Below are positions 1 to 38,699 of a stretch of DNA of 64,000 nt, piece after piece. The DNA is from Zygnema circumcarinatum SAG 698-1b (Eukaryota > Plantae > Zygnematophyceae), in assembly GCA_037447605.1 (NCBI GenBank), contig CM074819.1, positions 2,283,580-2,347,579 of the forward strand, in the 5' to 3' direction. Position numbers and translations under genes: made by a program. Numbering within the stretch: the first letter of the stretch is position 1; each line of letters opens with the position of its first letter. The notes under the pieces are model-generated. The model made no database searches. It was given only the letters and a program-made list of their open reading frames with translations, and was not told the origin of the DNA.

Positions 1-1724
1 ACTTTGGGGGATGATTATGGAAGTGCAGATGATGTGTGGATCAATGTGAGGAGGATACAACAGCAACAGGAGTGAAATTCACAATCAGAATCGCAATACT
101 GTAGCATGTGAATTGATATCCCACCTCTTCCCACGATTCAAAGTGGGGCTGAGCAGCCTGATTGTTGGCACTGATGATTTCGACAGCGTCAGTGAACTCC
201 ATCCCCTTCACAAAGGTCAGGTACCTGGAAAAAATAGAAGCACACGTTAGCCGAGATAAGGAAGAGAGAAGAGAGATGGAAAGGGGCAGAGAGCGAGAGA
301 GGGAGAGAGAGAGAGCGAGAGAGAAGGGGGGGGGGGGCTCACCCTAGAGCCACCAATGGACTGCGGTCCACCCCCGAGGTGCAGCACACGTGCACTTTAT
401 AGCCTAATGCCACGAGCGATGCGACAGCTCTCACAGCCTCCGGCAAAGCAGCAGCCTGTACAAAAAAAATCGCACTTTACACGTAAGGAAATGTTATCCA
501 TAAAGCTACCAGCAGCAGCAGTTCAATCAGTCTGCCATGATCTATGTGCCAATCTGGCCCAACCGCACCTGGTCCTGGTAGTCCCCGTCCCTCATGGAGA
601 TTCTGACGGCCATCAAACCCTTCTGGCTGGCCCTTTCCCGGAACTTTCCCCAGTCGAGGCCGAGTTTGTCACAGCCGTCTTCCGTCTGCAGACCATCAAA
701 AGCAATTGATCAGTTTTCACTAACAGGAGTTGTTAAAAAACGGCCTCCAATGATATTCTTAACTATGTTGCAAGTACGCAGAAGTAGTCAGCGGACGACT
801 GACCTCAAGGAAAAGGAGTGCGGTGGTCTTGGTGTTGGCGAGAAGGACATCGAGATCGCGAGGAGAGCGCGGGCACGGCCCCATGGACAGCTCCTCAGAG
901 AGCACGCTCCATGCAGGGGGCACCGCCTGCGAAGTACCTGAACACTCCAAATGCACTCCAATTCAGAGCCTTCCCCCCGTTTCGCATATCCTTTCTAATA
1001 TCTAACCACCAAAACTCCTCTTTCTCACTTTCAGCCCCCTCCCTTTCCCTACTGTTCCAGCCTTCACCATCTCCTCTCCCTCCCTCTCGAATTCCCATTT
1101 CGTTAGCTTATCTTTCCGACACTGGCCCCCCAATCAATTTTTCCATTCCAATCCATCAACTAATTTCCCTCACAGATATTCTTCTCTCTCAGTTTCTCAG
1201 CCATTTCTTCCTTTTTAAGTCCTTCTCCCTACCACTTCCCCAACCTGTTCCATTTCCCATTCCCCTTTCCCTCCTCCCTCATTCTCTGCTCCCTTTCCCT
1301 TTCCTCTCCTCTGCATTGCCCTCCCTTGCTCCTGTGGAAGTCTCCATTGAAATTTCTACAAGTTCCCCTGCCTGTCCCTCTCCCTCCCCTTCCCCTCCCC
1401 CCTCGCACACACTCTCACTCCCCTCCCCCTTCCGAAAGCGGACAGCTGGACCGCACCCGAAGAGCGCCACGTGGCGACCCCCGTGGACGGCGCCGTGGCA
1501 ACAGCATTGGTCCTGATTGGCGCGCCTCTGCGGGCGGGCGCCTTCCCCGCGCTCCCGCGCACAAGCAGCGGTCGCTGCCGCCCGTGGGCGTGTCGCCTGC
1601 CTAGCACGGGCAGGCCCTGGATGCTGCTGCTGCTGCAGGAGGAGGAGGAGGAGGGCACACCCTTCGCCGCAGCTGTGCTTTTCTCCAGAAGCGCTACCGA
1701 CGAGCTTAGGTTTACTGCCGCCAT
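1..1724 (-). CDS. Plastid-targeted dual-specificity phosphatase of the glucan-phosphatase (SEX4/LSF/laforin) family; 3' end lies outside the window
   Basis: Phase-consistent exons 1724-1457, 937-804, 685-569, 455-343, 224-125. They give a Ser/Ala/Arg-rich transit-like N-terminus, then WSVLSEELSMGPCPRSPRDLDVLL...GLDWGKFRERASQKGLMAVRISMRDGDYQDQAAALPEAV...VHVCCTSGVDRSPLVALGYLTFVKGM. This aligns by eye with the SEX4/LSF DSP domain (D-loop RDxD, CX5R loop). Confidence 0.85.
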
Positions 1725-1971
1725 GCTCTCTATCTTGATGAGCCGAGAAAAGCAGTACAGAGAGAGAGGGGAGGGAGGAAGAGAGAGGGGAGGGAGGGAG
1801 AGGGAGGGGAGGGAGGGGAGGGAGGGAGAGGGAGGGGAGGGAGGGAGGGAGGGAGGGAAAGAGGGAGGAAGGAGGGGGGCGAGGGGCCCGTGCGGCAGTG
1901 GCAGAGCGAGGAGGGCGCTAAGAGGGCCGGACGCAGCGCAGCCGCACGCAGGGCGGGGCCCTGCACGGGCT

Positions 1972-2176
1972 CCACGTGGCGCGGGTGGATAAGGGGCACG
2001 CGGCGGACCGCGTTCCGGCGACGCCCGCGACCGCCGGAACGGAACAGAGCATGGAACCGTCCCCCGCGACTACACGCACATAGCATGGAGTGGGTCCCGA
2101 CCGTTGCGCGCACGTGCGGGAGCCACGTGGCGCGCCGCCCGCCCCACGTCATGGCCCGGACGGGCCAGGACCGTAC
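1972..2176. promoter_or_regulatory. Promoter of the DSP gene with G-box cluster and one CCGTAC site
   Basis: CCACGTGG 1972-1979, CACGTG 2111-2116, GCCACGTGGC 2122-2131, CCACGTCA 2144-2151 and CCGTAC 2171-2176, in a GC-rich island upstream of the ATG at 1724. Confidence 0.55.
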
Positions 2177-4178
2177 TGCGCGCGCAACGGCGCCGGTCGT
2201 GCAGCTCCGTGCGGCGCTGCTCCGTCAGGGACGGGCCTGCGGAACGAACGGGCAGGATCTGTGGCTGGCTCTACGGGCCGTTGGACAGAGAAAGACCAGG
2301 TGAGAAAATAAAAATAAATGGACTGCCGTGGATTCCAAAAATTTGCAAATCATACAAATAGTCCGGTCGCAAATCTCAGCCGTCCGATGGCGTACCGCGA
2401 GCATTGACCAGATGCCGTCGATTCCCCGGCGGAAGGGGGGGAGCAGAGGGATGGATGCGTTCCCAGCCGTCGATCTGCAGCGGGCCGTCGAACAGTCGTC
2501 GGCCGGGCGCGTCGGGACGGCGGAACGGAACGGCCTCCTGCGGGGGCGCCAGCCGTCCGTCCGATGACAGCGCGCGAGCGAGCGCGTCGTCCCGCGCCGT
2601 CGATGACCGCTCGAGGGAGAAAGGGAGGGAGCGGACGGACGGACGGACGGACGCATCGCAGCCGTCCGCTTGCGGCCTCCCTGACGGCTCGCGCCTTGGC
2701 GGGCAGCAACTTCTTCCAGCTCATGACCGCCCGCCGGCCGACACCCGGCCAGGCCATGGCGGAGTCGTCACGAGGACAGCGCAGAGCGGCGTGGCAGGCG
2801 GTCAGCTTCGTCCTTCTTTGATTATTACCGGACGTACGTAATCATGTTTTAACCCTGGTGTTGCGCCGTCGTTACTGGCTGTACCCAGCAGCTGAGATAG
2901 GAAAAACATGGCGTTGCAGAGAATGGTGTGGCATTGGCGTTGCAGCGTACAATAGCTTGTGAACCAAGATGTTAAGAAGTGCTTATGTATTTCCCGCAAG
3001 TCGCAACAGTTATTCACCGACAGGTGCAGGGACATTGAGTATAGGGGACGTGAGGGGGAGCAGGGTGGGAGAGAAAATGGGGAAGAGAGTGAGGGAGAAA
3101 GGAAGAGAATGGGAAAGGAATGAGGAGAGTTTCGCGTTCCCGGTATTAGGCAGACACTCCAAGTTATTGAGTTAACTAGTTACGGAAGAATACACGATTG
3201 AGTAAGATTTTCCCCTATTAGAATTTGAAAAAGGATGTCAGCCATTAGTCGCCTTTGAGGGACTTCAGGTTTTTTGTTCCAACTCGTTAGTCAATCTTCC
3301 CAAAACTGAAGTCTATACTCTCTGCCCCCCCAATTCAGTATCCTCGTTCCGCACCTGTGGTTAACCGTTACAAATGCAAGATAGAGGTTTACCTTCACAT
3401 TTAAATTAATAAGAACTGCGCAGTCTCGACAAAGGAGGTTCTCCAGAGTTGGTGCAACAAACAGACATAATTAACCCACACCGCCTTAAACATGACTTCC
3501 AGATGTCTTTGCAAATTACTTTCACGCTTTTTCGCCTCGGCATCACGTGAGGAAGCCAGTGCCAAATTCACTAACTGCAACAATCTAAGAACGAGCGTTC
3601 CAGCCTCAATCGCCAAAAGCTCGTTAGGACCAGAAGGCCTCCGGTTGGTTAAAAATGTGCTCATTCAAAAGATTGAAACAAAGATTTTCAACTCCGACAA
3701 CATGGCTATCTCAAACACCATCACTCTATCAATGAACTATATCAAAGATGATTCAGTAATCGATGACCTGGCTGCTACTCCGTCACATGCGCTACTCTTT
3801 TAGAATCGCGTATCAGAAAATTAAATTGCGATTAAGCTTTCTCAAAAGACAGTACAAAGTGTTAAGAACTTATGTACTAATTAACTCTCCTAGCATGCAC
3901 TCGGCGTGCTCTGGCCTATCTCACTGACCCCGCACGCCCTATTCTACATGTACTTACAGCCCACATAGGAAAAGTCCGCAATGTGAGAAACTGGCTATGC
4001 AAGTGTTCGAGTCAGACCATTCCGAGCAGTAGCCCCTCGTGTGTGCCGTACAATGAATGCTGGGCCTGCTTGTCCCCACTCCGTGCCTTCCCTCTAGACA
4101 ATGTAACCATTAAACTGCAACCTCTGCGCTTTTGCACTTCAAATCTCACCTTTTTAAAGTCCCAACCCATCACATATT

Positions 4179-4507
4179 TTAGGTTTTGCTCCACCGTGGG
4201 GCTTCAGTCACAATGGCGGTGCCGTTTTGCGATGAGATAAAGGGAACAGCAGTTTTCGAGGCTCCATTGCTCGACTCAGCGGCTATCTCCTCCACCACCA
4301 CCACCTCCTCCCCCTCGTTGGGGACCACGCGGGCCTTAATGCCCTCATGCACGTTCAGCAGCTCCTGCAGCCGCACACGTCACAACCGCATAAGACAACA
4401 TCATTCATACCCAGCTACATAAAGGAACGGGCAACTCCTGAGAAAGAAGTTTATCCAGAACACAAGTTCCTACTATACCGCCTCCCTCCCCCCTCTCTCT
4501 CTCTCTC

Positions 4508-4567
<60 letters not shown>

Positions 4568-4711
4568 CCACTCTCTCCAAATCTCTCTCTCCAAATCTCC
4601 CTCTCCGATATCTCTCTCTCCAATATCTCTCTCTCCAATATCTCTCTCTCCAATATCTCTCTCTCCAATATCTCTCTCTCCAATATCTCTCTCTCCAATA
4701 TCTATCTCTCC

Positions 4712-4760
<49 letters not shown>

Positions 4761-7070
4761 GTCTCTGTCTCTCTCACCTGTGCGTTGGTACGAGCGGAGG
4801 TCGAAATGACGCTGAGAGCGAGGATGGAGAAGGGCTCCTCGATGAGCACTCCGACTTCCTCGACGCAGAAGAGCACCGCCGTGATGATGGCGGTTATGGG
4901 CACAGTGAGCCATCCGCAGGAGTCCCACAGGGCGAGCGGCAGGAAGAGGTGCCACAGCACGAGGAACCGGGAGGTCAGCCGCGTGTACGACAGGGGGATG
5001 GGGGTCTTGAAGATGCGCTCACTGCCTCCAATGTCATCGGCAAAAGTTTGCAGATTGTTGTCCTGCACAAGGTAAAAGGCTAAATTCAGCACCACCAAAA
5101 GAAAAAGACTCAGGTACTCAATTTATTATAATCAATATAAAGCGTTAACGTTAGGGGCATTCAAGGAGAGGCACTGCGCGCACCATGGACAGCTTCTGCA
5201 CGGAGTCGAAGGTGCAACGGCCGATGAGCTCGGAGCACATCTGAAGGATGTAATTAGGGCGGTGGGTGGTCGAAACGCACGCCTTGATCTCCTCCTCCGT
5301 GAGAGAGGTCAGCGTCTGCGGGCCCGCATTTCAAACTGCTTAGCTTCCCAAACAGAGGCTCCGATCCACCACAGCAGACAGAGAGCTGTTTTAGAAATTT
5401 AACCGGCGGCAGATACATTTCCAGTTTTCATAATCCCAGAAGAGCGCTGACCTTCAAATCGTACTCCAAGTCGCCCTCCTGCACCATGTGGTGCTTGTAG
5501 GTGATGGAGAAGGCCTGCAGGTGGCGGATGAACTGCAGCATCTTGGGGCGCTCGTTCTCATACTCCCCGCGCGCCATGTAAGTTAGAGCTTGGCGGGTGA
5601 TATCACGCGTTCTGTTCAACATCAGTCCCCACATTTTGCGGGCCTGCAAACACATTCACCATTTGGAAAAAAAGTCAGGCAATTAGCATAATATTACAAA
5701 CAAGAGAAATCGCAAATTTCAAGCAGGAAACAGTGTCTCGAGATACACAAGGGTGCAGTAATCACCTCATCGAAACGTCCGTAGCTCGCGTTAGTCCGGA
5801 AGACTAGGAGGAAAGAGAGGGCCGGCGAGGTGAGGGAGAAGGGCAGTGCGTTGACGTGCAGGAGTGGGAGCACCACCGGCAGGCTCGCCTGCATTATGAG
5901 AGTGTTGATGGAGCACACGGAGAGGGCGATGCCGGTCATGGCCACCACCGGGGGGACAAGGGACCCGATCACGCGCGAGCTCACAATGGACTGGATGTGA
6001 CGGACATAGCGACCGCTGCTCTTGTGCTTCTGCAGAAACAAAAAAGGAGAGACCTCACTGTGAAATCGGAAGAAAGAAAATAAAATTCGGCTCAGATGTA
6101 CTTTTTCAACTGCATGATAGTGGACTGAATCAACAATTGCAGTCAAGACAACCTCCTATGGCGAATTTTGTTTCCACGGTCAATTCAAAAAAATTCAAAC
6201 GCTTCACTTGTGCTGTACTGATGCAATTGCACTGTACAAACACTCTACATTGCACTGGCGAAGGACGAAGAATTGCATCGAATTGGCATATACAAAGCAT
6301 CGACCGAAACAAACGGTTCCAGCGAAAAAAAAAAAAACAATCTGTCGACGACATTGGAGCGTTCGCCACGAAAAGCAAAGGCGATCTTGATAATCTTACA
6401 GAACCAGAAGAAAACAGACAATAAAGGCGACGACATTGCAGGCCTTGGACCCATAGACAACCCTCATTCAAAGACTTTGAAAGACCCCGCACACCCAAGT
6501 GAGCGCAAAATTCACCCCCCTTCAAGATCGCCAATCAAAACGTAAATTTACCCTAAAATTCAAGAAGGGATCCACACGCACCTTCCAATCGTCGAAGGTG
6601 AAGACGCTGCGGCGGTACGGCATGCCCTCGAACTTGGCGCGGTCGACCTCCGCAATGTCGAGCAGAGCGGTGGTCAGCGGCGACTTCCCCCCCTCTGCGC
6701 GCACACGCGCGCGCCGACCCCCTGCGCCGGTGAGGGGCCGCCGGGACAGCTGGTGGCTCTTCCCCAGGCTCTGCCACATGCCTGACTCCGACCATCCATG
6801 GCTACCGGCGTGCGAGCAGAGGCCGGAGCAGCCGCATGCCTTCTTCAGACAGGCACCGCACTTGCAAGAGGCGGCGTGGCGGACAGAGGGCTTGCACACT
6901 GCGCATTTGCAGGACGCGCCATGGCGGGCAACAGTCCCCACTGCGGAGAGCTGCGCCGCGAGGCTGCCCGCGCATCCGCGACAGCGGCATGACGAGGAGT
7001 GAGAAGACACTTTCCCCGAAACATACAGCTTCATGGAGGTCGCCCCCATCGGACTCAGTGCGGTAGCCAT
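4179..7070 (-). CDS. BST: Thylakoid-type bestrophin anion channel (UPF0187; BST/VCCN family), 6 exons
   Basis: Exons 7070-6582, 6029-5766, 5643-5452, 5315-5184, 5062-4778, 4364-4179, all phase 0 with GT-AG. Family motifs: RRSVFTFDDWKKHKSSGRY, LSFLLVFRTNASYGRFDEARKMWGLMLNRTRDITRQ, HRPNY, PIPLSYTRLTSRFL, EEVGVLIEEPF. Confidence 0.95.
4490..4775. repeat. Compound intronic microsatellite: (CT)n plus about 7 copies of a 15-bp unit CAATATCTCTCTCTC
   Basis: Directly visible in bestrophin intron 5 (4365-4777). Confidence 0.9.
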
Positions 7071-7344
7071 GCCTGCCTCTGCTCCTCGCTCTCCCTCTCT
7101 TCCTTCTCTGTCTTTCCCTTAAAACTCCCTCTTTTTGCCTCTCTCCCTCCCTCTCTCTCTCTCCCGCTCTCACTCGCTACCTGCACACGAATTGCCGTGC
7201 ACAATTGGCGGTGTGGCGCTGATATCTGGCGGAGGGGGGGAAGAGCAGGCTGGGCGGGGGCTGCCCGGGGCCAAGTCCCGAGGCAGGCGCGGCGGCGGCC
7301 CGCCTCGCCTCTGATCGCGACCGCGTGCGCTCCGCCCAGGGCCA

Positions 7345-7841
7345 GCCACGTGGCACCGGTCACGCCCTTACGGTACGGCCGTGCGCGGACTGGCGGACGC
7401 CTCGCGCGTGCGGTAGTACGGACGGCGGCGGCGGAGTGCGCTGGAGTGGGCGGGCGGGCGGGCGGGAGCGTATGACCGCGGCTCCATGGAGCCCTGTTGA
7501 GCGTGGACCAGGTCGGAATCTGGCCAATCGCAGCCAATTTTGACACGAATGTGCCACGTGGCGACCTCGGAGTGGGCGGTGGGCGCCGGGGGCGATCGGA
7601 TCCGCGGCAGTCGGGCGGGGCTTTGGCTCCGAAGGCGAGGCGCGGGGCGGTTCGGGGCCCCGGCCCGGGTCTAGGTCCGGGTCCAGGTCCGGGTCTGGCT
7701 CTGGGCTGGGTTCCGGGCACAGGGGGGTGCTGGCGGGCGGCAGGGCGGCACGGAGTGTCGGCGGGCGGGCGGACGTGCCACGTGGCGGGCAGCGGAGGGA
7801 GGCGGAGGGTCGGCGGCCCCTCGGACTCGGCGCCACGTGGC
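7345..7841. promoter_or_regulatory. Bestrophin promoter: four perfect GCCACGTGGC G-boxes, two GTACGG sites, tandem CCAAT boxes
   Basis: GCCACGTGGC at 7345, 7553, 7777, 7832; GTACGG at 7373 and 7416; CCAAT at about 7524 and 7534. Confidence 0.6.
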
Positions 7842-8803
7842 CGGTCGCGGGCGGCAAGGCAGGTCGGCGGAGATTCGGTGCTCGCCGTGTAGGTGGTTGG
7901 GTGGCACGGGCAGGGTGGTTCGCACGTGCGAGCCACGGCAGTGCGGGTGGAGAGGTTGGCTGCAGGGAGGACTGACTGACTGACTGACTCGCTTCGATGA
8001 AGGACATATGATTTGTTGAGCATCCGCCACGACACGACGCGAGGCAGCTTTGTAACAGAACCACATCTCGCTTGACGGCCAGTTTTTAGGAGACATCGAC
8101 ATCGATGCTGGCTGGCTGGCTGGCTGGCAGTGAGTGATCACTCCCGGCCATCCTGTCCATAACCATTAGACGCATTCTCCACGAACGAACTTGTAAAGCA
8201 TCTCCTGTCCTCCCTCAGTCAGTGCGGAGGAGCTTAGGTCAGGCAGGCAGGCAGGCAGTGGGCACTGATCGCTTTGGCGAGTGAGGGGAGAGAGTGATGC
8301 ATGTGTGAGGAGGGAAACGAGCAGAACTCTTCGCACGTGCCACAAGCGCAATGATAGGAAACAGCTTAAAAAAGGCATGATGCCATCTATTTAGCTCAGA
8401 GCTAGGCTGTTGCTGCTAACAAGGAATCAGGTATCTGCAATCGATCAGCAGTCAGCTGCAGGTTTGGGCCGTATAGCAATTTCCACTACCACGCGTTCCC
8501 GTTCATTCTCTTTACTGTCAGATTTCCGTCCCATTGGGTACTTCGAATTCTGTAAGAAAAGCAGTCTAGAAAGTCGAGGGCTGGCAGATGAGCAGAAAGG
8601 AGATAGATGAACGCTCACTTAGATTAAATATTTGACTGATTTACATTGAACTGGTAACTCCACAACTACTGGCGCCTAACGGGACCCTCCAATTTTGGAG
8701 GGCTGCACGCTGACCTACCCTGCGACTGCTGCCTGACTAGTAATACACAACATGCACAGCCCCCTCCGTCTGCCACGTGTCTCCCCTATCACACTGCCTC
8801 CGC

Positions 8804-11470
8804 CTAAGCAAGGAGTCCTGCGCTGAGAGACTTGATGGTGGTGATCTGGTTCACTTCGCAATGGAGGAGATGGCGCTCTCCGCGGATCACGGCATACCTG
8901 CCACGTCATTTGCGATTGTGCTTGTCAGGCTCAAAATATTCATATAAATTATTTGACTTCTCATTTTTGCGTGAAGAATAGTTTTTCCGGAGAAACTGAG
9001 CACAGAGTTTGACGCCATTCTACACGATTGCACGTTAGAAAAGCATTGCTTGAGCACGGGGAGGTTCCATGCTCACATAGTTCCGGGGGCGACGTAGTCC
9101 ACAGTTCTGTCCAGCCGGAATGGCTCGCCCGGGATCTGGTCCACAGAACCACGAGGACCGACCGCCTCCCATTAGAAAGGAGAAGAGACTCGACTCGTCT
9201 GGGCACTACGATTGAGCTCAATTTACATGTTTACTAGGCGTGGTTCCATGTCTCTCCCCGCCAGAAAAGGCAGAGCCTCCAGGAGAGAGAATAACTATAT
9301 ATCGACAGTGGCAGAAATTTCTACATACAAAAGTGGAGTAACGAGTTAAGACATCCCCAAAGCCTCACCTGGTTGCCAGAGTGGATCTGCACTCCGGTGA
9401 CGACGGCGTAGTCAGATGTCTCGGGGTTGACGGTCTTAGAGATGAGCAGCTCCAAGTCGTCAGTGATCACCTGCGGCAGCATCCTTCACGAATTAGGTGT
9501 CTGCTTCCACCCTACCTCTTCGCTGCAAGCATTCATGGGAATCGGCATTGCAGGTAGATGGACATATGCCTTCAATAACAAAAGTGTCAATGTAAGAACT
9601 TTTAACAACTCACCTGCAGAGCGGCCTTTGTAACGTCGACAAGGCTTGGGCCAGAGGCGGTTTGGCAAGAAGGCTGCAGAAGTAAAGCAAATCCCACAGA
9701 CAAAGTCAACACAAACCAAAAAAAATTATATATATGTATATATATATGTATATACGATTCATTAAACGAGTGGGGAAGCGCTAACAATCCGCAAGTTCCC
9801 TGAGGACGCCTCTCGTACCTGGCTGAGAACCTTCCTCTTGAGCGTGATGTACTCCGCGTCCTCCTCGTCCTCCTCGATCTGCCCCGCCCCGAGCTTGGCG
9901 TCGTTCTTGATGGCGATCAGCGCCCCGCACGCGCTCGAGGGCTTCCCGCGGCCCCGCCGGAGGAGGGACCCGACCTCGCCGCTCTCGCCGATGGACACGT
10001 GCGGGAACGCGAAGAATACATCTGCGGGGAAACGCGCGGAGAGGGGCAGAGAGTTAGGGGCAGAGAGTGAGAGGCAGAGGGAGAGGGGCAGGGACAGGCC
10101 GGCGAAAGGTCAGTCAAAGTGCAGGCGCAGGAACGGGGCGAGGGAGGGGGGCGGGGCGGCACTGACAGCGTTCGCGCGGCTTGCCGTCCTTGTCGCAGGG
10201 GAACTCGGGGCTGTGGGACATGCCGGCCTTGAACCCCGTCTTGCCGCAGTTGATGAGCCCGCCCAGCCCGGACACGTTGAAGGACAGCCCGAACGTCTGG
10301 TCGATGTACGTGGCCAGGGGCCGGCACACCTGCACGCCAAAAAACACTCACGTTCGCTCAGTGCGGGGATGCAATAGGCCAATGCAATGTGCGTTTCAGA
10401 CTGCTGAACATTTCAGTCAATAAATTTTAAAGTAAAGCAAGGTCAGGGCAGCAGGTATTACCTCATCACGGCAGGTGTTCACAAGAGCGATGCAGTTTTC
10501 CCTGCCGGACATCCCAAACCGACCCTCATGTCAGTAGCGAATACGAAGAGCCACCAACATGCTGGAGAAATTCCTCCTCCCTCCCTCCCTCCCTCCCTCC
10601 CTCCCTCCCTCCCACCTGCTGAAGCCGAGGTTGAAGAGCTCCTCCGCCACGGCGGAGACGAAGCTCTCATCCTGCATGGCGTTGGGGAAGTAGTAGCTGA
10701 TGGTCGCCAGCGCCGCGGGCGCCGCCCTCTTGTTGAACTTCGACACCGCGCCGTTCGTGGACTCGGCCGCGGGCGGGGCCGGGGCCGCCGCTACGGGCAC
10801 CTCCTTCGCGGTGAACTTGGAGACCGCGGCGAAGCCCACCGCGCCGAGGACTGTGCCCACACCCAGCAGGGTCGGCACAGGCGCGGGGGCCACGCTGGAA
10901 CTCGCGGAGATGGACGCCACCTGCAGACCTGCAGCAGGGCGCGGGGCAGGGGGGTGAGGAGGGGAGAGGGAAAGATGGCGGGGGAAGTGGAAGGGAGAGT
11001 ACAGGAAGGTGAGCGGCAGAGAGAGAGAAGGGAAATAGAGAGAAAAGAGTACGGACAGGTAGAGTGGGACAGAGAGAGAGATACGTCGCAGAATGCGGGA
11101 AAGGGAGCCTGGGAAAGGGAAAGGTGAATGGAAGGAGCTTGGATGGGAGAGAGGATGAAACGGCTGAAATGTACAGAATATACAGAATGTATGGAGGTTA
11201 TGACAAGGGATGGAGCGAGTACGTGCTGGGGACCGAGCTGAAAAAGGATGGCTAGGGAGCAGGTTGGACGCTGAGGGAGAGCAGCTTACTCTGTGCCGCG
11301 GACATTTGAACGCTCTCCTCTCCTCCAAGAGCAGCGCTCACTTTAGACGCAGTCCATTTCCTAGCGGGCGCTGCAACCACAGCGGTGGCTGCGCTCTTAG
11401 GGGCAGCGCGCAGGCCGGCCCAGGAGGACACCTCCAGCTTCAGGCATGGGCTTCCCAGTGCGGCAGCCAT
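8804..11470 (-). CDS. LCIB: LCIB-family (limiting-CO2-inducible, beta-carbonic-anhydrase fold) protein, copy 1, 9 exons
   Basis: Exons 11470-11290, 10928-10616, 10501-10462, 10329-10167, 10021-9819, 9673-9614, 9470-9369, 9135-9077, 8897-8804, phase-consistent. LCIB motifs: NCIALVNTCRDE, FGLSFNVSGLGGLINCGKTGFKAGMSHSP, RERYVFFAFPH, SACGAL, ITDDLELLI, DYAVVTGVQIH. The Cys/His/Cys zinc ligands are intact. Confidence 0.95.
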
Positions 11471-11711
11471 GGCTTCCTTCTACTGCTGCGTTCCTCCCTC
11501 TCTCTCTCACTGGCTCTCTCTCTCTCTCTCACACTGGATCTCTCTCTCTCACTGGCTCTCTCTCTCTCTCACTGGCCTTCTCTCTCTCGCTCTCCTCCCG
11601 GTTCTTCCACCGCCTCTCTCTCTCTCTCTCTCTATACGCGGCGCGGGGCGCTCTCCGGCTTGGATTTGGGGGCACATGCACATGCACTTCGCCGACACGG
11701 GAGCTGCATCC

Positions 11712-11995
11712 TGATTGGCCGCGCGCCACGTGGCGTCCCCAAATGTGCGGAGACACGTGGCAGGACGGCAGGACCGTACTAAGGGATCATGGCTGTACGG
11801 CTGGACGAAATGCCGGGCGGGAGGGCATGGATCGCTGTACGGGGAATGTAGCGCAGACGGTTACGGCTGTAGCGGAGGGGTACACGTACGGCGGATTCGA
11901 GAATTGTGGCGGCCGTACTGCAGCCTATGCGGATCGGGGGCCGGCGGGACGATGCCACACGTGCGGCGGCTACAGTCGCAGAAGTCACTGTACGG
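11712..11995. promoter_or_regulatory. LCIB copy 1 promoter: six CCGTAC/GTACGG sites, G-box/ABRE, CCAAT
   Basis: CCGTAC or GTACGG at 11774, 11795, 11837, 11886, 11913, 11990; GCCACGTGGC 11725; ACACGTGGC 11753; ATTGG at about 11714. Confidence 0.65.
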
Positions 11996-14191
11996 CGGGT
12001 CCTGTCGTCCACTGTGCGGAAAGTGCACTTGGACAGGGGCCGCCTCTGTTCAAGGAAAGTGAGGGAGGGGAGGGGAGGGGAGGGGAGGGAAGGGGAGGCC
12101 ATGGCGGCTGTGCAGAGGCAAGGGGGGGGGCGGCGGGACAGCGGGCAGCCGAGGCCTGGGAGATTGCAAAGGGACCGTTTTGGAGAGTTGAATTCGATAT
12201 CGCCATTAGAGCGGATTATCTTTTCATTTGACTCCTAACTGTTCACAGGAATCACAAGAGAAGCTCCGCTTAAATTTCCTTCCAGGTTAACGTGAACGTG
12301 CAAGTGACTGCAGCTATCGCAAACAATCACCGCGCCACGCTTGGTTTCTTTCTGTTGCGCATCTACACCATCGCATCGCCTTCTGAACGCGTCCGAATCG
12401 ACTAGGATAGTAGTTGTCAACGTTGCTTCAAGGGTACGAACGTAGCTGACGTGAAATGTGATCACATCCCTGGTATGGATGCTTGAGTGGGATTTCTCGT
12501 TCGTCAATGGACGAGCAGAATAACTTCGCTAACGTTAACAAATTAAGTCACGTGTTTTCTGTGAGACCGCTACGAAAAAGGAACAGTTGTTGCTGGGAAC
12601 ATTATGCATTATAATTTTGGCAGGAATTGACAGATATTCACTTCAGATGTTTTCTACTTCGTCAGTGAGCGTAGCAGACAGCTTCAACTAGTTTCTAAAT
12701 AGAAGTGCAAGTTGAATGTTTTACAACGAATAGAACATGGCATGCTTCGTCAAACCAGCCGTCGATGTCTGCAAGCAGGACTTCCTCAAGACTGGCTGGA
12801 AAGCGCAATGGCTGTTTAGAAACGCACGACAGGTTTCCACCATTAGAGAACGAGCCCTCTTATCGCCATATGCATGTGATGTGACCAGACAGCTGAGGCC
12901 ACTACTATCCCCTGGCAACTATGCGAAAACCTGCGCAGCTTCGCAGCCACAGGAAAGCACGCACGTCTTTCCGGTGTTGTATGGTCGATGCAGGGCACAG
13001 ATATTCTCGCCTCCCTCTTCTGACATGCTCCAGTAGACTTGAAACCTCATTTGTCGAGAGCAGTACAGAACAAAAGCATTACTGACATTAGCGTCAATGC
13101 ATAATAGCAGTGACGCTCTCGCTTTTCCGCAATGCCCATTGCCACCCTTTCCTACTCCCTCTCCCTCTCCGCTGCAGAGACGCACAGCACATCATTCGTC
13201 GCACCTTTCAAGAGAGGTGGCATTTGCTCCTCACAGGGCCTACGTCTACTATATCCCTCACGCTTCCTGTGCGCCAGCCCTTCTTCCTTTCTCGGCCTTC
13301 CCCCATCCGTCTCTCTCGTCCTAGTGCGACCCTTCCTCTCTCTTCCCCCCTCTCGCTCAACCTCGTCACCCCACCTCCACCTCATTCGACATGTCTACCA
13401 CTTTCTGCTTCCCTCTTCTCTTCCAACCCTTAATTTCAACTCATTTCCTCAAAATCTGACAACACCTCCCCAAAATCTCGTTTCTTCTCCATGCCCTACC
13501 TGACTCTTTCCATGCTCCTGTCCTTCCCTTGGTCGCCCACCCTCCTCTAGCCGCTCATCCTTTACATCCTCAATTTGCGAGATTCCTAGGTGTGCATAAA
13601 TCTTCTGCTGCATCTCTCCCGCCACCTCCTTACCCCCTGGCTGAAGCCACTCGTAGCTTCCTCCCCCACCCCTTTTCCCTACCCTTCCTTTTCCCCCGCA
13701 GTGCCTCTATTGCACTTTTTCCCACTCGACCTCTCACATCGTCCCTCCCCATCGCCCATCACCCTCTCCAGTCTGGCCACATCCCGTCCCCCTCTCCCAC
13801 CATCGGCACTCAGACAGTTCATTCCCGTTAGCTACCTCCCTTCCTGCATGATAGCACTCACCTTTCTTGCGAAGGCCGCGTTCCCTCGCTGCTTTCTTCG
13901 CTGAAATCTCAGCTTCTTCTTCTGCTTCTCACCTCCAAATCGAGTCATCAGAAAGTCTCTCAGCATAGACACTTGAGTCGAACATTTGCAGTGCAAACCC
14001 GAAAGAATAAAAACCCCAAAAAAAGACTTCATCAACGTGTAACGTTAGAATAAAGTATTCCAACATCAGAACGGATGTAGAATTTAGGCTAGCATAATTT
14101 TCAGAAGCAGACAAGATTAATAGCCTTTAATAATTAGGCCTTTAATTTTCATCTCATCGTTTCAAAACACATTGCGGATTAGCTTCAGTGC

Positions 14192-14460
14192 AGAAGGCGT
14201 GGCAGTATGGCAGTGAAGTAATATACAATGGAACTATATAAGCTGCACAGGTTATACCGTAGTCCAAAGGGCAACACCGACCTGAATAGTAGAAGGCATT
14301 GCAGTGAACAGTGAAGCAGTTTACAACGAAACAATATAAGCTGCAATGATTGTTCTGTAGTGAGCAGCACTGCAGACCTGAAGTGCAAGACGTGGTATTG
14401 AAGCAATAAAGCAGTATATAACAGTACAATATAACCTGAAGAGATTATTCTGTAGCCAGG
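14192..14460. repeat. Degenerate tandem repeat, three copies of about 95-99 bp
   Basis: Recurring anchors: AGAAGGC (14192, 14291) and ATATAAGCTGCA/ATATAACCTGAA (14236, 14334, 14429), plus repeated TGTAG and GACCTGAA motifs. Confidence 0.65.
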
Positions 14461-14972
14461 GATAATTGTACACACCTCGACTACTGCAATTCCACCAAAA
14501 GCAACCGATCGACTTGATCTGTTACCCATATCGCAATGCCAGTTGACTTTCCACAAACTTTGCACGTCAATATAAGAGCACTTTTCCAACAGCACCATAA
14601 AATTAAAAAACTTTTTGACTTTCCAAATTTTCACACGCCTCTTGGGCGAATGCTCCACTAGTACACATAGACAAGGTACTCAAGATCGCTAGAAAAAACT
14701 CCTTTCCACACACTTCCGCGTCAGAATCTTAAAACCGCCTAATAAGGACTGACACTAATACCTCTCAAGCGTAAGCACTGCTCCCCCTATCTTCAGAACC
14801 TCTCCTGCATGCGCGCAGCACTGGACCCTGCATTGGGCGTTTCCAGCTCGTTACTTTATACAACGGCAATTGGATGTTTCCACAGAGGACAGACCTACTG
14901 TCTGCCCGCACTTCTCTATTCCGTTATTGCACGGAAGCGGAACTACAAGATCCTCAGCAGCACTCGAACTCC

Positions 14973-17331
14973 TCACGCAGACACGAGCTGGGCGCTGACT
15001 GACTTAATGGCGCTGATCTGGTTAACTTCGCAGTGCAAGATGGACTTCTCCCCGCGGATCACAGCATACCTGCAATGCATGCAATGCGCGACCATTGCAA
15101 TCAGTCAGTAGCTAACAAGCAATCTTGCAGAGGCGCAACATTAACTCTTCGTCTGTGTAGGCACTCAGGATTTCTAAATTCACTCACATTGTTCCGGGAG
15201 CGACGTAGTCGACTGTCCTGTCCAAGCGGAAAGGCTCACCGGGAACCTGCACGCAGAAAGAAAACGACGTGAGGGGAAGTTGGACAATGTCGCAAAACAC
15301 ACAGGAAAGAAGACGCGGAAAGAGAGAAAGAAAGGTAAAACAATGAAAGGAGGGGAAGTTTGACCTGAGCGCCGGAGTGAATCTGCACACCAGTGATGAC
15401 AGCGTAGTCTGAGGTCTCAGGGTTCACAGTCTTGGAGATGAGGAGCTCCAAGTCGTCGGTGATAACCTGCAGGGAGAAAAAAAGAGGTTAATGGCTGGAG
15501 AAGAAAAACCACACTGCAGCAAAAGTTTCCCCTATCGAGAACAACTGCTTTTGAAGTCAGAGTCTCACCTGCAGGGAAGCCTTGGTGACGTCCACCAGGG
15601 ACGGGCCAAGAGGACCGGCGTCTCTGCAAACGGGCTGCATAAAGAAGGGAATGCAGGGTTAGAAATGGAAAGCAGACACTGGGAAATGTAACCAGCTGAA
15701 ATCATAGTTGAGTTAAATTTTCGAGCTCAATTACCTGGCTGAGAACCTTCCTCTTGAGCGTAATGTACTCCGCATCCTCGTCGTCATCAGCAATCTCTCC
15801 ATCGCTGGCACTGTTCTTGATGGCGATGAGCGCTCCGCACGCGCTGGAGGGCTTACCGCGGCCACGGCGAAGGAGAGAGCCGACCTCGCCGCTCTCACCG
15901 ATGGACACGTGCGGGAACGCAAAGAACACATCTGCGGGCAAACGCGCGGAGAGGCAGAAGAAGAGAGGCAGAGAGAGGCGGGCAAGAACAGGCCGGCGAA
16001 AGGTTAGTCAACGTGCAGGCGCAGGGAAGGGGCAGGAACGGGGCGAGGGAGGGGGGCGGGGCGGCACTGACAGCGTTCGCGCGGCTTGCCGTCCTTGTCG
16101 CAGGGGAACTCGGGGCTGTGGGACATGCCGGCCTTGAACCCCGTCTTGCCGCAGTTGATGAGCCCGCCCAGCCCGGACACGTTGAAGGACAGCCCGAACG
16201 TCTGGTCGATGTACGTGGCCAGGGGCCGGCACACCTGCACGCCAAAAAACACTCACGTTCGCTCAGTGCGGGGATGCAATAGGCCAATGCAATGTGCGTT
16301 TCAGACTGCTGAACATTTCAGTCAATAAATTTTAAAGTAAAGCAAGGTCAGGGCAGCAGGTATTACCTCATCACGGCAGGTGTTCACAAGAGCGATGCAG
16401 TTATCTCTGCATAACATCCCAATCCGACCCGCTGTCAGTAGCAAATACGATGCACCACCGACATGCATAAGAAATATTTTCTACCTCTGCCTTCGCCTCT
16501 ACCTCCTCCCTCCCGTCCTCCTTGCCTCCCACCTGCTGAAGCCGAGGTTGAAGAGCTCCTCTGCCACGGCGGAGACGAAGCTCTCATCCTGCATGGCGTT
16601 GGGGAAGTAGTAGCTGATGGTCGCCAGCGCCGCGGGCGCCGCCCTCTTGTTGAACTTCGACACCGCGCCGTTGACAACCACGGGAGCCGGAGCCTCCTCC
16701 TTGGTGGTCATCTTCTTGAAGACGGCGTAGCTGGTGGCTCCCAGGAGGCCACCCAGGGCGAGCACAGCGGGGACGGGGGGCTGCGCAGCAGCAGTGCTCG
16801 CGGAGACGGAGGCCGTCTGCAGGCCGGCGAAGGAGACCTCATTGCCTGCCAAGATTGCAAAATACCAATTAATGAAAAAGATTTTCAAGAATCCGCATGT
16901 TCCTTAAGTCTTGTCCCTTTCCTGCATATCATTTGACGGACTACGACAGCTACCTGCACTGAAAATCTTAACTTAAAGGGATTTACGAGTTAGTCTCTAC
17001 CACAATGCCTCTTACTCTAGACCTCCTTCCGGTTCATCACATTGCTATCAACATCGTCCTTGCTAAGGCCATCGTTCTTTGACCATCATTTCTTCCCATA
17101 ACACTTAAACCATTTATCTCCCATTAATACTCTCGTTCTTACAACTTCCCCTCCCACAACAACCGCAAAGCCCTTACTCGCAGCGGAGCTCTCCCCAGCC
17201 TGAGCGAGCACGACGCGAGACACCTTCGCCACTCGCGCAGTCTGTGCCTTGACAGCGACCTCCTTCCCTGCAGAGCGCAGGCCTGACCACTGGAGGGCCT
17301 CCATTCTCAAGCTGGCGCTGGCGGTGGCCAT
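14973..17331 (-). CDS. LCIB: LCIB-family protein, copy 2 (tandem paralog), 9 exons
   Basis: Same intron positions as copy 1 (exon 1 17331-17178, exon 2 16845-16533, exon 3 16406-16367, exon 5 15931-15735, last exon ends at TGA 14973). Motifs NTCRDE, FAFPH, SACGAL, DYAVITGVQIH and YAVIRGE are present. Confidence 0.95.
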
Positions 17332-17556
17332 GGCTTCCTGGAAGAGAAGTGCGGAGACAGACGGGTGGGGAGCGTGTGGGCGAGAGGCTGGCTGGCTAGC
17401 TGCGAGGCGGGGAGCAAGCAGTACTGAGTGCGCGATGGGTCCCCGTCCGGCCTTTAGCGCCTCTCCCTCCCTCCCTCCCTCACGCGGTGGCCTGAGAGCG
17501 CGGCCAAGTGCACGCGCGGACCGGCCCTGGCCCGGGAATGGATGAGGCCGGCCTCG

Positions 17557-17712
17557 CCGTACAATATGTACGAATAGTACGGCCCACGGTGCTGCCAATG
17601 TGCGGCCCTGGAGGCTGCCGTGCGGTACGAAAGGAGCGACGGCCGTACGGACGAGCGAGGGGGGCGCTCTCGCCGGTGCTTGGCGAGGAGTGGACCGCAC
17701 GTGCCGCACGTG
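17557..17712. promoter_or_regulatory. LCIB copy 2 promoter: five CGTAC-core sites and tandem CACGTG
   Basis: CCGTAC 17557, GTACG 17568, GTACGG 17577, GTACG 17626, palindromic CCGTACGG 17643; CACGTG at about 17698 and 17707. Confidence 0.6.
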
Positions 17713-18892
17713 CGGGAGTGGGGGGGACCGGCGTTTGGGGAGAGGGGGAGGGAGGGAGGAGGGTAGGTGAGTGGGCGGGCGTGGGGTCGGGAGGGGGAGG
17801 GGGAGGGGGAGGAGGAGAGGGAGAGGGAGAGGTGGAGGAATGAGGGGGCTTGTGGAGAGAGAGGCGCAGGTGAGGATGAGAGGGAGGGGGACAGTCGATG
17901 GAGATAGGGGAAAGGAGGAGAGGGCTTCGCGGTGGAAACGGAGGGAAGGGAAGGGAGGGTGGAGGGTTGGGCGCAGAGTAGGAGACTTTGATGGCTTTGA
18001 GATTCAGTTGTTACATTCATCCAGCAAACCACCCTTTGACAACTCGTGTGAGGGAAATAATGATTTTTTCTGACTTAAACAAAGTTTGTCCTTCATTCAT
18101 CTACCAAGAGTCTGTCTTAAAATTGGAAAATTTCTCAGTTCAGGAAGTCAGAGTTAACGACTACGTTGACGACTCCTGATGCACATGTTCAATGCACGCA
18201 TTCAAGGTGACTTCGGTGCCGGAAAAGTATTCCGCTATCAGTAGACAATGCAGCATTTCTGTCGTCGGACATAATCCGGCAGCGGGAAAGCGTGTATGCT
18301 GCGAAGGCTTGCGCCCAGTGAGGCGTACGGATGGCCTCGCTCACCGCTGGGGAGCAAGGAGACGTGCGCAGGCAGGCAGGCGTCCAGGCAGGTCCCGTGT
18401 CCAGGCCCCCGCCTCCCCCCGGGCAGCATTGGGCCCCTCCCTGCTCGACGGAGGCCACTTCGCCCAACCCTTGCTCCATGCGCTCAGGGAATGTATGCGG
18501 ATCAGTTCACTACTGGGGAGCAGGAACAGGATCCTCTTCGACAGGTAGGGGTGGGGGTAGGCTTGCAAATCGATGGAGTTTGTTTTGAAGGGCGACTTTT
18601 TTATTCGCAGTTACAACTTGTTTCGCGGGGAAGGGTGCACTGATGTGAGATTCAAAAGTGTGAATGTTTTCGAAGTCTGCAACCCCGAATAGCGTAGGGG
18701 CAGGTCTGCAAAAGGGAGGCCGGAGGTGCAGACGCAAACTGAAACGTCTAGCGCGGTTGGCCGTCCGTGCGAGAAACCTCTTTTCGCGCTCTGCTGACCG
18801 CCTGCTTTTGCAGATCCCTTCCCTCCCTCTCTCTCCCTCCCTCCCTCCCTCCCTCAGTTTGCAGGGCCTACTTTCTCTGGCCCTTTCACTTG

Positions 18893-37500: not shown

Positions 37501-38699
37501 AGGGGGCATAGGGGGCATAGGGGGCATAGGCCTCGCGCCGGCCACCTGCGCCGCCGCGCTCACCGCCGCGGCGCGCGCCTGCAGCACCAGCACCGCCCAG
37601 GACCTGCACGCGCTGCTCAGGGCCCTCGCCGCTGTGGAGGGACCGCTGGCGCAGGCCAGCTGTCGACTGCTCATGGGCCCAGGGCTGTCAGATGAGCAGG
37701 TGATTGGTTGGCTGGATAGAGAGGGGGGGGGGGGGGNNNNNNNNNNGGGTTGGTGGTTCTAGGGTGGCTTTGGTTGATGCTTCTCCATGGCTGTGGTTTG
37801 GTTCGTCTGCGGGTTTTAGCCATCCTCGAGCTGTTTCTCAACACACTGCCAGCGTGGCGTTGTGTCCTGTACGGTGAGGGTGTTGGAACGCGCTAACCCT
37901 AAGTTGAGTTTGTTTGCGGCCACATTGAGGGCGACTGCAGGTGAAAGCTGAGGTAGGGGGCCTTTTGGCCGCGTTAGGTCCGTCTGATCTGCGCACTTCA
38001 ACGATCTTCACTTCTGCTCTCCTCGATGCTCTGTGGGCTCTCGGATGGCGCCGGAGGGGGGCGCTCGTTCTCGGGGTTTGCATAGAGAGGGGTCTGCATC
38101 AAAACACGGCGTTTCTCTCCTCGAGTGAGCTGAAGCTCGATCTGCGACGTCTATCTGTAGGAGCTGCTCTGCTCCTTTTCCATCAGTGGCTTGCTCGGCT
38201 GTTCGCAGTTGCACATAATGCAACAAACAGTGACATTAGTGGCAGCGTGGAGGAACCTAACCTAGAGATTCTGTTGCCTCTGCTTCTCTCCACGAAAGAG
38301 GGCTGGAGAGGTCTGAAATCGGATCATGATGGTCTCGTAGTCCGTAAGATGGGAGACGACAATGAAAAGCGCCACCAACAACCTATCCCCTGGCAGGATG
38401 CAAGTCCGTATGCTTCAACTCCGGAGACGCTTCCAGAAGTATTGACAGTGGTGGTCGGCTGGGGCAGTCGTAGTCGCACGCAAGGCCAGTCTCTTATCCG
38501 CACGGCTCTCTGCCAAGAGATCGAGCGCCTGAAACTGCCCTTGCGCCCCGTGGAGGCGAACAGTCCCACGTGGGGCCGCCTGGCGGCTCGCGGCGACGAC
38601 CTGCGGCGCTGGCTGACGCGGTCCCGCAGCGCGCTCCAGCGGGCCATGCAGGACCGCCCGCCGCGGGACCAGGGCCTGCTGCCGCCGCCACGTGGCTGA
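34530..38699 (+). CDS. P-class PPR protein with C-terminal SMR domain (GUN1/pTAC2-like); 5' end uncertain
   Basis: PPR motifs such as DIITYNVLLHSLF, PNTGTFNVIMNAHV, PTVVTYSALIAAYCRAG, PHIITFNAALRAYA and PTVATFTTLMVAYV. The C-terminal ALLDALWALG...LDLRRLSVGAA...HQWL...LPEVLTVVVGWGSRS...GRL...WL is an SMR domain. The start may be upstream, possibly the ATG at 34100. Confidence 0.88.
37737..37746. other. Assembly gap (10 N) inside a G-run in an intron of the PPR-SMR gene
   Basis: Ns are visible in the sequence. Confidence 0.99.

Follow-up and report, generated by a model that had tools for sequence, protein, structure and literature searches.

A bestrophin gene beside tandem LCIB genes in Zygnema circumcarinatum: a probable ancient gene pair of streptophyte algae

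The left end of a 64,000-nucleotide stretch of the Zygnema circumcarinatum SAG 698-1b genome (assembly GCA_037447605.1, contig CM074819.1, positions 2,283,580 to 2,347,579 of the forward strand; this whole stretch is the window throughout) raises the question of whether its neighbouring genes form a co-regulated cluster serving the CO2-concentrating mechanism (CCM) and, if so, which of them belong to it. The original prediction had placed a starch-phosphatase-like DSP, a bestrophin (BST) and two LCIB genes in such a cluster; the four gene identities proved correct by Pfam and by homologs. We propose that the real unit is probably the BST-LCIB pair and not the four-gene cluster, that it is ancient and has been maintained, and that its part in the CCM chassis may be assigned by analogy. 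The comparison of gene order and sequence makes an old, maintained BST-LCIB pair of streptophyte algae, rearranged and duplicated in this alga, the most likely account.

The window comes from a eukaryotic nuclear genome, its introns being of the GT-AG type, and four expressed, consecutive and co-oriented minus-strand genes, DSP (partial), BST, LCIB1 and LCIB2, occupy window 1-17.4 kb:

1..1755, minus strand: 5' portion of the DSP gene, atypical and LSF-like (spliced RNA contigs of 4 runs with CT..AC junctions; DSPc match)
1755..1457 (ATG at 1724), 937..804, 685..569 and 455..343, minus strand: DSP exons supported by RNA contigs
224..125, minus strand: DSP exon 5, inferred from the reading frame and a loose contig end at 124
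2625..7070, minus strand: plastid-type bestrophin (BST/VCCN-like), 515 aa (Bestrophin_2 matches, homology-guided model, RNA contigs)
7070-6582, 6029-5766, 5643-5452, 5315-5184, 5062-4778 and 4364-4179, minus strand: the six coding exons of BST (homology-guided model)
8804..11470, minus strand: LCIB1, 376 aa, nine exons (PF18599 matches, homology model, RNA word share)
14973..17331, minus strand: LCIB2, 371 aa, nine exons (Pfam LCIB_C_CA, homology model, RNA word share)

Gene models were guided by relatives from exon-anchored searches, and when minus-strand open reading frame (ORF) pieces were scanned with Pfam, three exons matched Bestrophin_2 and two matched LCIB_C_CA, with a weak match to DSPc. 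Pfam matched none of the 10 intergenic ORFs between the array genes, no tRNAs were found there, and RNA depth in the DSP-BST interval is 0-15 outside the BST 3' untranslated region (UTR). Runs of the RNA type contain 0.45-0.60 of the sampled words for BST plus LCIB1 and for LCIB2, which is about the exon share. The RNA evidence, the gene models and the empty intergenic ORFs together establish the four array genes as real and expressed; the predicted row of four consecutive minus-strand genes is thus borne out by gene models, RNA contigs and RNA word share. The transit-peptide-like N-termini of the original prediction also stand, as far as composition only suggests them: residues 1-60 of each array protein include 23-27 Ser, Thr or Ala and 0-2 acidic residues.

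The adjacency of BST and LCIB recurs in two other genomes. In Klebsormidium nitens (locus L006, DF237159.1), a 460 aa Bestrophin_2 gene (minus strand, 3550-8471) and an LCIB gene (plus strand, 10001-15181, P0066), both verified by gene models built in this analysis, stand head-to-head 1.5 kb apart, and an alpha-carbonic anhydrase (alpha-CA) gene at L006 1-472 (PF00194, Carb_anhydrase, 379 aa, truncated at the edge of the locus) follows tail-to-tail just beyond BST. The 14-kb desmid-like metagenome contig L011 is collinear with this locus, carrying BST on the minus strand (6269..3350) head-to-head with LCIB on the plus strand (from ~7.9/8.66 kb), with ~1.7 kb between the apparent BST and LCIB start codons; both of its genes group with Closterium sequences. 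No flanking genes are common to the window, L006 and L011, tblastx having given only spurious short matches. The suspicion that two unrelated CCM families are neighbours for a reason is strengthened by this recurrence between scrambled flanks: the adjacency of the non-homologous BST and LCIB genes is conserved beyond background synteny. A BST neighbour was found at 0/17 of the control loci long enough to judge linkage, and the chance of a BST lying immediately beside a given LCIB locus is <1e-3 by a rough estimate (~5 plastid BST genes, at least 15,000 genes). The Monoraphidium LCIB locus (L010) has no BST neighbour, nor has any of the 46 metagenome LCIB loci (12 of 6 kb or longer), which are chlorophyte-like or distant save for one short Klebsormidium-like transcript.

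The LCIB-linked bestrophins form one clade, in which the window, Closterium, L011 and L007 sequences (Shimodaira-Hasegawa-like approximate likelihood ratio test, SH-aLRT, 100) are joined by the Klebsormidium BST (92), and which is separate from the Spirogloea, moss and seed-plant VCCN1/2 sequences; this tree is midpoint-rooted only and leaves out chlorophyte BSTs, including Chlamydomonas BST1-3. The closest relatives of both the LCIB and BST proteins are found in Closterium and streptophyte transcriptomes, with Klebsormidium farther, as would be expected of a streptophyte alga that is most likely a zygnematophyte. Among named proteins, the best BST relatives are the land-plant VCCN1/VCCN2 (in Arabidopsis and Malus, VCCN1 is the thylakoid voltage-dependent Cl- channel), with 55-65% identity in the large C-terminal exon. 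Grouping of the bestrophin with photoprotective VCCN1, which had been offered as a refutation of a CCM role, is non-discriminating: the best named matches are VCCN1/2, yet the protein sits in its own algal clade (92, midpoint-rooted).

The BST gene is abundantly transcribed (RNA depth 721-6583), and four of its splice junctions were verified by RNA contigs of four runs mapped on window 1-6000. Its 3' UTR, 1.1-1.7 kb long, ends at ~3063 and ~2625 in different runs. Separate exons match positions 5-81, 81-138 and 189-286 of the Bestrophin_2 profile, the middle part being assigned by homology, and the domain is complete (profile 5 to 286 spanned across exons). In contrast to VCCN1, the window BST belongs to the algal LCIB-linked clade and bears a Cys-rich N-terminal extension (window 6798-7001) with repeated SC(K/R)C / CxxC motifs; the extension is absent from the Klebsormidium, Closterium and L011 BSTs. 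By analogy, the protein would be located in the plastid, on the thylakoid, and would transport bicarbonate. As side observations, a short SCKC motif also occurs in the N-terminus of one Closterium LCIB (P0006), and the last BST intron (4400-4750 region) is rich in GA/CT microsatellite and a 15-nt tandem repeat.

The partner genes encode recognisable LCIB proteins. LCIB1 exons match PF18599 (LCIB_C_CA) with scores over the gathering threshold (E 4.5e-12 and 7.7e-10), and core identity of the window LCIBs to their full-length relatives is 60-80%. The motifs NTCRDE, FAFPHVSIG and SSACGAL are present in both models, and the same three motifs align between P0001 and the structures of CrLCIB (5K5W) and CrLCIC (5B5X). 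We take the Cys-His-Cys zinc ligands and the adjacent Asp of LCIB to lie in NTCRDE/FPHVSIG/SSACGAL, following Jin et al. 2016. Judged by motif conservation, LCIB1 and LCIB2 are intact carbonic-anhydrase genes, with predicted catalytic activity and plastid location. They are 81% identical and sisters in the tree (SH-aLRT 97), and by these measures are a lineage-specific tandem duplicate pair. Window 9816-10755 aligns with 15732-16672 at 89% DNA identity over 964 aligned positions, two introns included, while outside this ~940-bp tract the DNA alignment is limited to exons, at 81-83%; the tract looks like the result of a recent duplication, gene conversion or uneven divergence. Some 19 residues of Gly-rich hydrophobic sequence (LCIB1 residues 50-68) lie after the transit-peptide-like start and ahead of the CA domain:

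10822-10872, minus strand: Gly-rich hydrophobic helix of LCIB1
16700-16760, minus strand: Gly-rich hydrophobic helix of LCIB2

This stretch occurs in all streptophyte LCIBs examined, that is, both window copies and those of Closterium, Mesotaenium and Klebsormidium (P0001, P0006, P0010, P0053, P0066), whereas the chlorophyte LCIBs examined (P0072, P0074) are without it. It is consistent with the chloroplast-membrane location published for hornwort LCIB. Closterium genomes hold at least 10 LCIB paralogs, including the co-oriented tandem pair CLOM_g534/g533 (L004 10001-15128, Closterium sp. NIES-68), and in several Closterium gene models LCIB is fused with an adjacent gene, for example DRG GTPase, PHO4 or EMP24; sequence comparison indicates an expansion and dispersal of LCIB in desmids.

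Shared CCGTAC and G-box (CACGTG) motifs had been predicted in the promoters of all four genes. The relevant upstream features, none of them assigned to a strand, are the following:

1889..2214: upstream of DSP, three G-boxes, four CCGCACG and one CCGTAC
7071..8800: BST upstream region and LCIB1 downstream spacer, two CCGTAC (7373-7421) and seven CACGTG (7347-8774)
11774..11995: LCIB1 upstream cluster, six CCGTAC and three G-boxes (11727, 11754, 11958)
17557..17715: upstream of LCIB2, four CCGTAC and, twice, the extended G-box CCGCACGTG

Four 700-bp upstream regions (GC 64-72%) were compared with 1000 local dinucleotide-preserving shuffles. CCGTAC, the top enriched hexamer once low-complexity ones are set aside, occurs 13 times against 0.84 expected, a count reached by 0/1000 shuffles, and is distributed unevenly: six copies at LCIB1, four at LCIB2, two at BST (P=0.025) and one at DSP (not significant). 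CACGTG occurs 10 times against 0.47 expected (DSP 3, BST 2, LCIB1 3, LCIB2 2; each P<=0.01). The prediction thus holds for the G-box at all four genes, but CCGTAC belongs mainly to the LCIBs. In the whole window there are 30 CCGTAC against 10.7 expected and 30 CACGTG against 12.2; G-boxes are less specific to the array because other GC-rich promoter-like tiles of the window carry them too. The extended form CCGCACGTG lies upstream of DSP, LCIB1 and LCIB2 (2113, 11960, 17695-17715). CCGCACG, which together with G-boxes is found upstream of all four array genes, has 22 copies in the window where 6.2 are expected, and one each in the BST-LCIB intergenic regions of Klebsormidium (L006 9315) and L011 (7341); it also arises from the conserved FPHV codons of LCIB exons (9996, 15906). 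Among five BST and LCIB upstream regions k-mer sharing was not above shuffles, and ACGTGCGG/CCGCACG, the sole recurrent string, is a lead only. An origin of the common LCIB promoter sites as plain duplication remnants was ruled out, since the DNA of the LCIB1 promoter could not be aligned with that of the LCIB2 promoter. Common cis-elements are present within this alga, and the CCGTAC clusters are species-specific and stand mostly at the LCIBs.

The DSP gene extends past the left edge of the window, which holds only its N-terminal part; the longest DSP RNA contig has 3271 nt, ~2.5 kb of which lie beyond exon 4. Exon 4 (343-455) matches Pfam DSPc weakly (E 8e-4, under the gathering score) and encodes the P-loop HVCCTSGVDRS, in which CX5R is present (CTSGVDR). 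The loop is atypical, with Cys for His before the catalytic Cys and Asp preceding Arg. The P-loop signature of glucan phosphatases is C-zeta-A-G-psi-G-R, and the DSP departs from this signature by Ser for Ala and Asp for Gly; CTSGVDRS resembles the CTTGFDRS of LSF1. Single DSP exons searched against PDB and NCBIfam gave nothing useful and ESM Atlas gave generic DSP labels only, and the protein was classified solely through its Closterium ortholog, which came to light when the P-loop exon was searched exhaustively. Among the 8 matches of that search the full-length one, CLOM_g4069 (P0196, 1143 aa), is 38% identical to the DSP over the available 145 aa and has the same HVCC(S/T)xGxD(K/R) loop, with Lys in place of the P-loop Arg (residues 190-206). 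Its DSP domain has LSF2 (4KYQ, E 3e-7), LSF1 (8J5D, E 4e-7), laforin and SEX4 as nearest solved structures. Unlike LSF1, LSF2 and SEX4, P0196 continues in ~900 aa of coiled coil: Pfam finds a weak DSPc and a coiled-coil-type match and, over the 1143 aa, no CBM (CBM48) and no PDZ. The label "starch-phosphatase-like" is thus apt for the catalytic domain, closest to LSF2/LSF1, but not for the rest of the ortholog. The DSP may be a pseudophosphatase scaffold, with an architecture that was not matched to any described protein.

How far does this evidence separate the possible readings of the array? A co-regulated four-gene CCM module with the starch-phosphatase-like DSP as a member is quite improbable. 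Its genes are consecutive and co-oriented, G-boxes and CCGCACG precede all four, and the catalytic domain of the DSP ortholog is nearest LSF2 and LSF1 among solved structures. However, the Closterium neighbours of P0196 are unrelated genes, L006, L007 and L011 have no DSP in the vicinity of BST or LCIB, the ortholog is without a CBM by Pfam, the single CCGTAC upstream of DSP is not significant, and the BST/DSP RNA depth ratio varies from 1.1 to 8 across runs (contig depth being a poor measure of expression). Because the ortholog's neighbours are unrelated, the other loci have no DSP and the depth ratio varies, the DSP is treated as a bystander, and it looks like one that is unrelated to the BST-LCIB pair. 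As a member of a CCM cluster it is not supported, being unlinked elsewhere, with no CBM found in its ortholog and with depth that does not track BST. Chance adjacency arising independently in each genome, combined with an ordinary LCIB tandem duplication, is very unlikely, because the pair recurs in Klebsormidiophyceae and zygnematophytes despite reshuffled surroundings. It could draw on the differing gene orientation, on the lack of linkage at a number of Closterium loci and, it seems, in Anthoceros, and on there being three positive cases only; but against the rough per-locus probability given above, three cases among a handful of streptophyte loci contrast with none among the controls, and the linked BSTs are orthologous.

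Several observations weigh against an ancient, maintained pair with a CCM role. The window arrangement is tandem, while those of K. nitens and L011 are head-to-head, and L011 is a metagenome assembly. Four Closterium LCIB loci (L001-L004), one of them a tandem LCIB pair, have no BST within ~10 kb. In Anthoceros agrestis, where linkage was judged from published gene IDs only, LCIB (Sc2ySwM_368.2612) and the tagged bestrophin (Sc2ySwM_362.1957) are on different scaffolds. CCGTAC and CACGTG are not enriched upstream of LCIB/BST in Klebsormidium, Closterium and Monoraphidium. The alpha-CA beside the K. nitens pair, a candidate counterpart of CAH3, is known from its Pfam label only, and the closest named BST relatives, VCCN1/2, are photoprotective Cl- channels of land plants. 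The proposed microsynteny check gave a divided answer, with BST-LCIB linked in K. nitens and L011 but not at the Closterium loci examined or in Anthoceros, and with no linkage of DSP. Closterium is not a clean negative, because its examined LCIBs sit in paralog subclades other than that of the L011 LCIB (P0037, P0042, P0034, P0040, P0044). One Closterium BST locus has no LCIB, and the L007 BST locus is uninformative on LCIB linkage because only 2.1 kb of upstream sequence is available. The rival that deserves most attention, though we hold it unlikely, accepts BST-LCIB as a conserved functional pair and gives it a non-CCM role in thylakoid ion/pH homeostasis or VCCN1-like photoprotection, LCIB providing or buffering bicarbonate and protons for photosystem II or the stroma. 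It would fit VCCN1/VCCN2 as the best named BST homologs, the published lack of a CO2 response among hornwort CCM homologs, and the G-boxes, which suggest light regulation over CO2-specific control. It fits less well with the loss of LCIB in land plants without a pyrenoid CCM and its retention in hornworts and algae (PMC8075897), with the alpha-CA gene adjoining the pair in Klebsormidium, and with the position of the linked BSTs in a clade apart from the land-plant VCCNs (unrooted tree). Land plants with VCCN1 have no LCIB, unlike this alga.

The BST-LCIB pair, as we favour it, would have been neighbours since before the split of Klebsormidiophyceae and Zygnematophyceae, with a likely original head-to-head layout over a common promoter region of ~1.5-1.7 kb. 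In this alga the pair would have been rearranged, by inversion, into the co-oriented array LCIB2 > LCIB1 > BST, and LCIB would have been duplicated in tandem. Functionally, it would join a carbonic anhydrase of the LCIB type (theta/beta-like), placed in the stroma or on the envelope side, to an anion channel of the bestrophin type in the thylakoid. By analogy with the LCIB-BST-CAH3 chassis of Chlamydomonas and hornworts, LCIB would convert stromal CO2 to bicarbonate, the BST channel would let bicarbonate enter the thylakoid's acidic lumen, and a lumenal alpha-CA would free CO2 near Rubisco; the linkage may have been retained by common cis-regulation or dosage control. It is from this analogy that we infer plastid/thylakoid location, bicarbonate transport, co-regulation and a CCM role in this alga. 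The bolder statement, that BST-LCIB, with alpha-CA alongside in Klebsormidium, is an ancient, selected and originally bidirectional genomic core of the streptophyte CCM chassis that predates land plants, is advanced tentatively, as a possibility that falls just short of being an even call.

The Chlamydomonas reinhardtii chassis of LCIB/LCIC, BST1-3 and CAH3 has the same two families, the LCIB motifs, a Bestrophin_2 channel and the proposed division of labour. Chlamydomonas carries its LCIB and BST genes on separate chromosomes, whereas in this alga and two other streptophyte algae they are neighbours. The Anthoceros agrestis LCIB-BST1-CAH3 spatial model is a streptophyte form of the chassis, but its three genes are on separate scaffolds, unlike the neighbours of the window (CAH3 on a third, listed as Sc2ySwM_344.4293 in the supplementary table and with scaffold 228 in the main text). 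BST, LCIB and CAH3 were described as the chassis that Chlamydomonas and Anthoceros have conserved (doi 10.1101/2024.06.26.600872), and hornwort LCIB as membrane-associated and BST1 as thylakoid, enriched near pyrenoids (Robison et al., doi 10.1101/2024.06.26.600872; Lafferty et al., doi 10.1101/2024.06.24.596764). Gene linkage is not discussed in Robison et al. or Lafferty et al. ("cluster" and "synten" occur 0 times). Adjacent carbon-acquisition genes have precedents in the cyanobacterial ccm and sbtAB operons, sbtA and sbtB being neighbours and co-induced, and physically clustered CCM genes in the Chlamydomonas CCP2-LCID...CCP1 neighbourhood (Cre04.g2227xx-2233xx IDs) and the BST1-3 tandem array. 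These known clusters join other families (CCP, LCID/E, CAH1/2) or paralogs only, unlike BST-LCIB. No report of BST-LCIB linkage was found in the searchable literature, which was incomplete, nor of such a pair conserved across algal classes in the literature searched.

That the LCIB-BST-CAH3 chassis is ancestral to land plants is currently argued from gene presence and localisation in a single hornwort. If the favoured reading is true, the BST-LCIB neighbourhood at the Klebsormidium/zygnematophyte grade would be independent genomic evidence of joint function in streptophytes, and the linkage would flag this bestrophin clade as the bicarbonate-channel partner of LCIB, as opposed to a VCCN1-type Cl- channel. 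It would further offer a small module of two to three genes under a natural, shared bidirectional promoter, a minimal set to test or transfer. To our knowledge, deeply conserved non-homologous gene pairs are rare in algae and plants, which gives the BST-LCIB pair added interest for the study of genome evolution.

None of the window's long ORFs was seen to be an alpha-CA, and window 23327-63100 holds ordinary genes:

23.3-27.3 kb, minus strand: long ORF gene with a PHD-like exon
28.2-30.3 kb, plus strand: V-ATPase subunit E
34.5-38.7 kb, plus strand: PPR protein
41.4-55.3 kb, plus strand: Sec7 ARF-GEF
57-63 kb, minus strand: transportin-like gene

The window also contains an assembly gap of 10 N at 37737-37746.

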